A stretch of 64,000 nt of DNA from Salpingoeca rosetta (lineage: Eukaryota; Protista; Choanoflagellata), in assembly GCA_033442325.1 (NCBI GenBank), contig JAWQFM010000036.1, forward strand, positions 62,175 to 126,174. Direction: 5' to 3'. The notes below the pieces were generated by a model. The model was not told the origin of the DNA. It saw only the letters and a list, made by a program, of their open reading frames with translations, and searched no databases. The translations under genes were made by a program, and so were the position numbers. Of the stretch, positions 54,945-56,818 are shown piece after piece (position 1 is the stretch's first letter; each line of letters starts with the position of its first letter).

Positions 54945-56818
54945 ATGTGCATGAAGTCTGACCATGCGGTGATGGCCTTTGGCGCATCCTCGTCCTCCTC
55001 GTCCTCGTCCTCTGGAACGGCAGCCAAGCTGGTGGACGTCGACACCGTGAAACAGTGCCTGAAGGAGAAGGACGCCATCGTTGTGGATGTGCGTGAGCCT
55101 GATGAGCTCACGGCAGAGGGCGCAAAGACCATCCCGGGCGCCATCAACTATCCGCGTAAGCGACACTTTGACATGATTGTTGTGGGGGTCCCATGCATGT
55201 CATGTCACGCGAAGTTGGGGACACGTTGTATTCCAACAAGCATGCCAAAGCAAGCGAGCAGGCACGCATGCGTTAATGCATATCCCACGCTGCTGTGTGG
55301 ACCTAGAGCACCACCCTCGTTGACATTGATGTGGTGTGTGATGTGATTGACCTTTGTGATTGACATTTGTGATTTCACCATTCTTGTGCCCTCTCGTGCG
55401 TGCTGTTTGTGCCCTGTACAGTTGGGCCGCTGCTGCGCGATTCTGCAGAGGGCAACCCCAAGCATGGCGTCAAGGACAAGAAGGAGATTGTGCTTGTGTG
55501 CAACGTTGGCTACCGCTCCGGTGTTGCCGCTCAACAGCTTGCCTCATTTGGCTTCCCAGCAGCATCCCTCGACGGTGGGTCTTTCCTTGCTTATTAAGTG
55601 TGCGTGTGCGTGTGTGTGTGTGTGTGTGTGTGTGTGTGTGTGTGTGTGTGTGTGCGTGTGCGTGTGCGTGTGTGTGTGTGTGTGTGTGTGTGTGTGTGTG
55701 TGTGTGTGTGTGTGTGCGTTGATGATCGCCTGCTTGCTTGCGGGCTTCGTTGATCACTGCTGTGCCCCATGCACATACATACACACGCGCAATCTCTTCC
55801 CCACCCTTGCCCTCGCTCGTCCCCTTGATGCCTCTCAACAACCATCTCCTCCCCCCCCCCCTCCATCTTCTCCTCTCGACCCCTGCAGGCGGTGTTGAGG
55901 CGTTCCATGCGCCACGGGCAGCCTGGCTCAAGCCGCAATATGTGGTTGTGCTCGAGACAGCGGACGCAGACCGTGCAACGCTTGCTCTCAGCGTGGCGAC
56001 GGCAGCGCAGGTCAACGGGCGCACCACCGCCTTTGCGCTCATGGCCAAGGCGCCCCTCCTCTTCCGTAAGGAGGGCGTGGACAGCGACGTCTGCAAGCGC
56101 TACGTCGACATTAACGTGCGTGGGAACGCTCATGTGTTATGTGTGTGTGTGTGTGTGTTGTGTGTTGTGTGTGTGTGTGTATGTGTGTTTGCGGTTGCGT
56201 TGGTTTGTGTGTTTTTGCGTTTGCGTTGGTTTGAAAACGTAGGTGCGTGTGTGCTTACATAAGGTAGCTGTCTGGTTCACTCTCTGGTGCCTTGTCTGTT
56301 CCTATCTGCTTTTTCCTTTGACACCACCTCCATCCTCCCCCCACCCCACTAGGTCGGTGAGCCCTTCAAGCCCATGGCCAAACTCGTCGAGAAGTTCGTC
56401 TCCAGCGGCGGCACAATCTTCGCATGCAAATCATGCGTCATCCACAGCGGTGTGTGTGTGTGTGTGTGTGTGTGTGTGTGTGTGTGTGTGTGTGTGTGTG
56501 TGTGTGTGTGTGTGTGCACGTGTGTGCACGTGTGTGCACGTGTGTGCTTGTGAACATCGTTTTGGGTGCGTGTCTCCTTGCCCGTGTCCTTGCGTCTCCC
56601 TACCTGCTCTGTGCGAAGCAGCAGTACGTTGTCGCCCCTACACTGCCCTTCACCTTATGCACGCTCACCCACCACCACCACCACCACCAACATTGCACCA
56701 CCGCCACCACTGCACAGGATTGGAGTACAGCAAGATGGACGACCTCGTGTATCCTGGCCAGGCTCCCGACCTCGTGCGCATGACAGCCGGTGCCGAGGGC
56801 TCCACGTGTTTCGCATGA
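54945..56818 (+). CDS. Rhodanese-DsrE/DsrF-like fusion protein (putative sulfurtransferase), 262 aa; exons 54945-55155, 55422-55574, 55889-56115, 56353-56449, 56718-56818
   Basis: Exons sum to 789 nt in frame with GT/AG sites. Rhodanese: [19 protein letters not shown], active loop [18 protein letters not shown]. DsrE-like: [56 protein letters not shown]. Confidence 0.88.

Follow-up and report, generated by a model that had tools for sequence, protein, structure and literature searches.

A eukaryotic rhodanese-YchN/DsrE fusion family in Salpingoeca rosetta and other protists, and its candidate role as a persulfide relay

A stretch of 64,000 nucleotides from the genome of the choanoflagellate Salpingoeca rosetta (contig JAWQFM010000036.1, positions 62,175 to 126,174 of the forward strand; hereafter the window) contains a gene whose five exons encode the 262-residue protein PTSG_10837, in which an N-terminal rhodanese domain is fused to a C-terminal domain of the DsrE type. 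Searching 1.84 billion cluster representatives exhaustively with HMMER, we recovered about 40 full-length relatives with the same two domains, 240-306 amino acids long and at 29-59% identity, and a further homologue search with the family alignment (A1) returned family members only. We consider it probable that PTSG_10837 belongs to a family in which a GlpE/TSTD1-type rhodanese and a YchN/DsrE-type domain together form a persulfide relay, and which was inherited within the choanoflagellates. The likeliest function is that of a trimeric relay, in which sulfur would pass from Cys97 of the rhodanese to Cys222 of the C-terminal domain and be resolved by Cys225.

The N-terminal domain matches the Pfam Rhodanese profile (PF00581) at 47.9 bits (cut-off 22.2) over residues 32-129, spanning positions 2-101 of the 102 in the profile. 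Six-residue CX4R active-site loops characterize true sulfurtransferases and seven-residue loops the Cdc25 type, and by its sequence the loop C97-N-V-G-Y-R102 is of the six-residue type and catalytic in type. In an alignment of 35 family members Cys97 and Gly100 are each conserved in 34 and Arg102 in all, and the invariant positions of the whole protein are D48, E51, E54, R102, G123, C222, C225 and D247. An AlphaFold2 model built on this alignment (mean pLDDT 91.3, pTM 0.82) is poorly defined at residues 1-27 only. Its residues 25-131 adopt the rhodanese alpha/beta fold, with matches to the rhodanese domain of B. anthracis CoADR-RHD (3ict; Z 15.9, root-mean-square deviation (rmsd) 1.5), the Shewanella persulfide reductase (Z 15.3), human TSTD1 (6bev; Z 15.0), GlpE (Z 13.6) and yeast YOR285W/RDL1 (3d1p; Z 12.2).

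For the C-terminal domain, PTSG_10837 scores 20.8 bits against the Pfam DsrE profile (PF02635) as a whole protein and 22.9 bits when residues 134-262 are used alone (cut-off 22.7), and exons 3-5 taken singly match nothing in Pfam or NCBIfam, the pieces being too short. All 35 homologous C-terminal domains match PF02635 at E <= 0.01 (best 1.6e-15), so that an assignment which is borderline by sequence for PTSG_10837 alone is firm for the family. A profile of the 35 domains also matches E. coli YchN (1jx7) over the full length of the latter (E 4.7e-4). In the model, residues 136-261 superimpose on 3mc3 (Z 16.6, rmsd 1.8 over 110 amino acids), 3pnx (Z 16.1), 2qs7 (Z 14.4), YchN (Z 14.1, rmsd 2.3 over 112 residues), DsrH (Z 13.3) and TusD (Z 12.1), and Foldseek recovers the DsrE-type fold at E 5.5e-7. 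Matches to RecA in PDB sequence searches were rejected, as they involved concatenated RecA chains scoring 4-9 bits per stretch. The first-pass annotation of this region, made from the nucleotide sequence, had described an intact catalytic rhodanese loop fused to a DsrE-type half with a CxxC motif. The loop type, Pfam score and fold bear out the former, the fold and the family-wide PF02635 matches the latter, and a failure of the C-terminal half against DsrE/F-like profiles or folds, which that annotation had named as telling against its reading, was looked for and did not occur. A DrsE_2 (PF13686) match, for which that annotation had suggested a search, is absent from the protein and from a six-frame search of the genome. 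Six-frame searches with PF02635, PF13686 and the TusA profile (PF01206) were all blank, but such searches are insensitive in this intron-rich genome and missed even the known DsrE exons. PTSG_10837 itself contains no TusA domain.

The CxxC motif of the family, C222-K-S-C225 in S. rosetta, aligns with C-K-T-C of YchN. A search of the sampled Bacillota genomes with the eukaryotic C-domain profile turned up two YchN-like genes, L047 (G549:C5:8995-9506) and L048 (G648:C4:7767-8212), which carry an in-frame TGA exactly at the position of the first cysteine, giving K-L-U-G-T-C; judged from these sequences, this codon probably encodes selenocysteine. Both genes probably belong with the DsrE-like UxxC selenoproteins already known from the literature (PMC1088965, PMC2398784, PMC13188914). 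Selenocysteine normally takes the place of a reactive residue. As it would stand in these homologues at the position of C222, the most likely assignment from the alignment is that C222 acts as the nucleophile and C225 as its partner.

Predicted by ESMFold2 in three copies, the C-terminal domain gave an ipSAE of 0.95, against 0.00 for the best control, and the prediction runs had at least 98% of contacts in common at pLDDT of at least 94. Of 30 proteins solved as one-chain pairs, 21 reached the ipSAE mark used here, and of 23 solved as single chains none did; these counts were obtained with two copies and apply only roughly to a three-copy job. The predicted interface is made up of PF201-202, C222-C225, APD245-247 and the C-terminal strand. 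In the model the invariant motifs would thus come together in a composite site where subunits meet, like that of trimers of the DsrE type, the DsrE3 proteins being homotrimers (PMC11094781).

A further conserved element, which the first-pass annotation had not noted, is a short N-terminal motif. The sequence M-C occurs at the same alignment position in 31 of the 35 members and is followed by Ser5 in 28 of 32, giving the pattern M-C-[S/L/T/M]-x-S, which in S. rosetta reads M-C-M-K-S (54945-54959) and belongs to a disordered tail some 25 residues long, of pLDDT 44-52. Some of the remaining members have truncated N-termini. In two members, S. infusionum P0156 and P0030, the motif is internal, behind an upstream extension, and the annotated starts of both are probably too far upstream.

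Contextual information comes from a further fusion and from bacterial gene neighborhoods. The Mastigamoeba balamuthi member P0040 (EP00727 P004676), a protein of 1025 amino acids which likewise starts with M-C, combines the rhodanese and DsrE domains with a class-V aminotransferase domain (residues 599-1015), whose best NCBIfam and PDB matches are the SufS/CsdA cysteine desulfurases. Beyond Rhodanese, DsrE and Aminotran_5 it has no Pfam match, and no MOSC domain was detected. Through this natural fusion the rhodanese-DsrE module is linked to enzymatic production of persulfide. The closest prokaryotic relatives found are free-standing 'DsrE family proteins' of 123 amino acids, at 37 loci in Burkholderiales, Ottowia, Martelella, Pseudomonas, Psychrobacter, Tissierella and others (e.g. 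HLR14118.1 from a Burkholderiaceae bacterium). At 8 of the 37 loci (L011, L017, L023, L024, L027, L028, L040 and L043) the homologue follows genes for a flavoprotein and a DUF5368 protein. The flavoprotein resembles type III sulfide:quinone reductase, matching that model at 208 bits, below its cut-off. An AhpD-like CMD gene between this pair and the homologue was confirmed only in Ottowia thiooxydans (L011). The gene content of these neighborhoods points to a sulfide-oxidation or redox context. The Ottowia cluster (L011:2566-5372) also adjoins a relaxase/DUF3363 gene and may be mobile.

We propose the following sequence of events for the relay. Cys97 would take up a sulfane sulfur as a persulfide; thiosulfate, glutathione persulfide or another small molecule could donate it, as could a cysteine desulfurase. 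The sulfur would then move to Cys222, the first cysteine of the CxxC motif, at the predicted subunit interface of the trimer. Finally, Cys225 would resolve this persulfide, with release of sulfide or transfer of the sulfur to a further acceptor, leaving a disulfide which cellular thiol reductants would reset. Cys2, on the disordered tail, might serve as a third, mobile relay thiol or as a regulatory one. The physiological role could be the handling of sulfide and persulfide, or the delivery of sulfur for biosynthesis. We infer that the protein is cytosolic, because a presequence is not evident and the conservation of Cys2 speaks against cleavage. Bacterial rhodanese and DsrE proteins do exchange persulfide sulfur (PMC11094781), and the suggestion of the first-pass annotation that the gene encodes a self-contained cysteine-to-cysteine sulfur relay, a type of system familiar mainly in prokaryotes, is supported by our results, each transfer step being inferred.

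The following considerations weigh against such a relay. The DsrE score of the S. rosetta protein sits at the Pfam cut-off and is borderline by sequence, and in one member (P0025) the rhodanese cysteine is replaced by serine. The predicted trimer may have passed our controls from the structure-prediction model's memory of solved oligomers of the DsrE family, and the transfer from Cys97 to Cys222 could occur within a chain, between chains or not at all. What is known of the family comes from sequence and predicted structure, and to our knowledge its closest solved relative, YchN, is without a known function. Moreover, CxxC and UxxC motifs are typical of thiol-disulfide oxidoreductases as well as of sulfur carriers.

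This last point leads to an alternative which we regard as unlikely: that the C-terminal domain is a thiol-disulfide (or selenol) oxidoreductase or a peroxidase-like redox protein rather than a sulfur carrier, its CxxC motif cycling between dithiol and disulfide, with the rhodanese as a regulatory or substrate-binding module. The UxxC homologues have been classed as candidate thiol-based oxidoreductases (PMC1088965, PMC2398784), the AhpD-like gene stands beside the bacterial homologue in Ottowia (L011), and the JGI label for family members is 'predicted peroxiredoxin', which appears to be an automatic family label. However, the fold is that of DsrE, neither thioredoxin nor peroxiredoxin, and there is no Pfam redoxin or AhpC match. 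Furthermore, the rhodanese loop is of the full catalytic type and has been conserved alongside the CxxC motif, and the joining of the module to a cysteine desulfurase-like domain in Mastigamoeba speaks for sulfur mobilization.

A second alternative retains the chemistry of the persulfide relay but assigns it a biosynthetic role, as a TusD-like carrier fed by a cysteine desulfurase and supplying a pathway such as molybdenum cofactor sulfuration or tRNA thiolation instead of sulfide detoxification. P0040 is annotated as 'molybdenum cofactor sulfurase-like' and has rhodanese, DsrE and class-V aminotransferase domains, the nearest solved relatives of its aminotransferase domain are cysteine desulfurases, and TusD is among the fold matches of the C-terminal domain. 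Nevertheless, we consider a dedicated biosynthetic function quite improbable: the MOSC domain was not detected in P0040 by Pfam, TusA is missing from PTSG_10837, the bacterial gene neighborhoods point to sulfide oxidation, and a patchy phyletic range fits a core biosynthetic role poorly.

The phyletic range itself bears on the origin of the fusion. Ten named eukaryotes besides S. rosetta have it. Five of them are choanoflagellates, among which are Barroeca monosierra, Salpingoeca infusionum, Choanoeca perplexa and C. flexa. It also occurs in the ichthyosporean Creolimax fragrantissima, in Corallochytrium limacisporum, in the amoebozoans Balamuthia mandrillaris (KAL6065377.1, "Sulfurtransferase") and Mastigamoeba balamuthi, and in the diplonemid Lacrimia lanifica (Euglenozoa). 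A further member has an MFI/IQ ciliary-type gene next to it on its contig, which suggests that this member is eukaryotic, and another is an uninterrupted open reading frame on an mRNA-looking contig of 1445 nt. No animal, fungus or plant is found among the named fusion members, most matches carrying no species name. No bacterial protein with the rhodanese-DsrE architecture is found among the best 150 matches in the 1.84 billion representatives; to judge from ESM Atlas neighbors, Rhodanese, TusA and DrsE_2 domains frequently occur together in bacteria, but in other architectures. In evenly drawn genome samples, matches occur in 13 of 400 Pseudomonadota and 10 of 300 Bacillota (14 of 401 and 11 of 301 when seeded reference genomes are counted), and all the sampled prokaryotic matches lie in open frames of 85-182 amino acids, too short for the fusion. 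Judged from the sequences available, the family is so far exclusively eukaryotic, patchy in its distribution and old within eukaryotes.

The free-standing bacterial proteins share with the C-terminal domain the motifs P-F-x-P, G-G-x-x-x-x-C-x-x-C, A-P-D/E and G-S-x-Q, but are about 30% identical, fall on a separate long branch and are never seen fused to rhodanese in the genomes searched. Compared by hhalign, the eukaryotic alignment matches the bacterial one with 99.7% probability (E 1.6e-26, 117 columns) and every motif in register, and an ESM Atlas search matches the structure to a free-standing bacterial protein at TM 0.89/0.92. Matches of the bacterial alignment (A3) to de novo TIM barrels were rejected as noise. 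In a maximum-likelihood tree of 75 C-terminal domains the bacteria form one clade (support 100/98), set apart by a branch 1.02 changes per site long, and the choanoflagellates another (88/98), in which S. rosetta groups with Barroeca (98/83). The C-terminal domains of Corallochytrium and Lacrimia pair in this tree (99/89), contrary to the species tree, which hints at eukaryote-to-eukaryote transfer or transcriptome contamination.

The first-pass annotation had taken the gene to be a novelty, a prokaryotic fusion acquired horizontally by the S. rosetta lineage and only later furnished with introns. Both claims, novelty and horizontal gene transfer, have to be given up because the fusion is broad in eukaryotes (Choanoflagellata, Ichthyosporea, Corallochytrium, Amoebozoa and Euglenozoa), the very finding which that annotation had named as telling against them, and because the choanoflagellates form a clade of their own, the bacteria standing on a separate branch. 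Although both domain types and their pairing are typical of bacteria, the large ESM Atlas clusters resembling the C-terminal domain are all bacterial, the eukaryotic range is patchy and the Corallochytrium-Lacrimia grouping conflicts with the species tree, the acquisition scenario is very improbable given the same architecture with an N-terminal M-C-x-x-S in at least three eukaryotic supergroups, the choanoflagellate clade, the lack of a bacterial rhodanese-DsrE protein among the best 150 matches, the short prokaryotic frames, the four introns and host-like third-position GC content (GC3 0.75) of PTSG_10837, and its absence from the published S. rosetta transfer candidates as given in the main text and two supplementary files. 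On these sequence comparisons a recent bacterial transfer into S. rosetta is rejected and the gene is one inherited within choanoflagellates; an ancient bacterial origin of the DsrE domain is possible.

The conserved N-terminus suggests a further, speculative extension of the relay, to which we give a low probability: Cys2, exposed after removal of the initiator methionine, might act as a swinging-arm persulfide carrier or as an N-terminal-cysteine degron. As a carrier it could shuttle sulfur among the rhodanese cysteine, the CxxC motif and an outside partner. As a degron, its oxidation or persulfidation could set the lifetime of the protein, thereby tying its abundance to oxygen or sulfide. 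A six-frame genome search for the PCO_ADO domain (PF07847) was blank, such a search being insensitive and having missed even the known DsrE exons. Either role, if true, would amount to a novel design among eukaryotic sulfurtransferases, and together with the desulfurase fusion of Mastigamoeba it would define an unrecognized eukaryotic sulfur-trafficking module.

The gene model underlying these conclusions (Table 1) is right because its spliced product is identical to an annotated protein. Joined by script, the five exons, of 211, 153, 227, 97 and 101 nt and bordered by GT..AG introns, give 789 nt, or 262 codons and a TGA stop, and the product agrees letter for letter with the NCBI hypothetical protein PTSG_10837 (P0001), recovered by a database search seeded on exon 3 and labeled in UniRef as a rhodanese domain-containing protein. 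The first-pass annotation, which had assembled five exons into a single 262-residue protein, had thus rebuilt from raw sequence a model already in public annotation, and its placement of the Cys97 codon at 55499-55501 and of the CxxC codons at 56425-56436 is confirmed on reading the region. The ATG of exon 1 is the first start codon downstream of an upstream stop. In local tblastn searches, proteins of six other species (the queries including those of Barroeca, S. infusionum, Choanoeca perplexa, Corallochytrium and Balamuthia) match all five exons collinearly. The matches stop no more than a few bases away from the splice sites of the model, and for the four queries of the choanoflagellate clade the query coordinates are contiguous over all five exons. 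The junction of the rhodanese and DsrE domains falls within a single exon, exon 3.

Table 1. Exons and introns of the PTSG_10837 gene (positions in the window)
Feature	Position	Strand	Content
Exon 1	54945..55155	+	Start codon, M-C-M-K-S, Ser-rich disordered tail, rhodanese start; residues 1-70 plus one base
Intron 1	55156..55421	+	GT..AG
Exon 2	55422..55574	+	Rhodanese core; active-site loop C97-N-V-G-Y-R102-S
Intron 2	55575..55888	+	(GT)n tract 55600-55718; CA-rich tract 55768-55790
Exon 3	55889..56115	+	Last rhodanese helix, conserved linker, first half of DsrE/YchN-like domain; residues 122-197
Intron 3	56116..56352	+	GT..AG
Exon 4	56353..56449	+	P-F-K-P motif; G-G-T-I-F-A-C222-K-S-C225
Intron 4	56450..56717	+	5' end (GT)n, 3' end (CAC)n
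Exon 5	56718..56818	+	A-P-D247-L-V-R250-M motif, C-terminal strand; TGA stop 56816-56818

PTSG_10837 is single-copy in the S. rosetta genome (55.4 Mb in 68 contigs). The sole other genomic match is a rhodanese domain on contig 11 (G000:C11:1142100-1142411, forward strand), in an open frame of 429 amino acids, with 35% identity to residues 20-118 of PTSG_10837. The (GT)n tract of intron 2, roughly 120 nt long, forms pairs with the downstream CA-rich tract, and the minimum free energy of the intron is -85.2 kcal/mol (z -3.05 versus shuffles); intron 3 shows nothing unusual in the same folding comparison (z +0.57). The neighbors within the 64-kb window provide no functional context, an adaptin N-terminal region being the only domain recognized among them. 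A divergently oriented open frame of 600 amino acids on the reverse strand (52794-54596) contains a long poly-Thr stretch and repeated Gly/Asp-rich units and has no Pfam match.

Sulfur carriers of the DsrE/TusD/YchN type have been treated as prokaryotic tools. In the literature searched on DsrE, rhodanese and eukaryotes or protists we found neither a mention of PTSG_10837 nor a description of a eukaryotic DsrE-family member. The protein is best understood as a eukaryotic version, so far unstudied, of a sulfur-relay module familiar from prokaryotes, and its chemistry is not of a new kind. Among its closest known counterparts are the bacterial relays Rhd_2599-TusA-DsrEFH of A. vinosum and Rhd442-TusA-DsrE3C of Hyphomicrobium, the multidomain Rhodanese+TusA+DrsE_2 proteins and the CoA-disulfide reductase fusions. 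With the Rhd-TusA-DsrE relays it has in common both domain folds and the principle of passing a persulfide from cysteine to cysteine. It differs from the bacterial relays in being eukaryotic and intron-bearing, in lacking TusA and a PF13686 match, in the order and size of its domains, and in having CxxC where DsrE and TusD have a single active-site cysteine.

Each half of the protein also has free-standing counterparts. Human TSTD1 and yeast YOR285W/RDL1 have a rhodanese fold and loop type like those of PTSG_10837, but are single-domain proteins without the DsrE domain. E. coli YchN matches the C-terminal domain over its whole fold, with the C-K-T-C motif and the C-terminal strand in alignment; unlike PTSG_10837 it is a free-standing bacterial protein of 117 amino acids, with neither rhodanese nor N-terminal Cys tail, at about 20% identity. 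DsrE-like selenoproteins of marine bacteria and Bacillota, described in the literature (PMC1088965, PMC2398784, PMC13188914), have their UxxC motif at the same position as the CxxC of PTSG_10837, but are free-standing, of unknown function and use selenocysteine where PTSG_10837 has cysteine. The eukaryotic family defined here, with its four conserved cysteines, predicted trimer and natural fusion to a cysteine desulfurase-like domain, is therefore a concrete candidate for how some protists handle persulfide sulfur, and it offers YchN and the UxxC selenoproteins a functional context in the form of partnership with a rhodanese.

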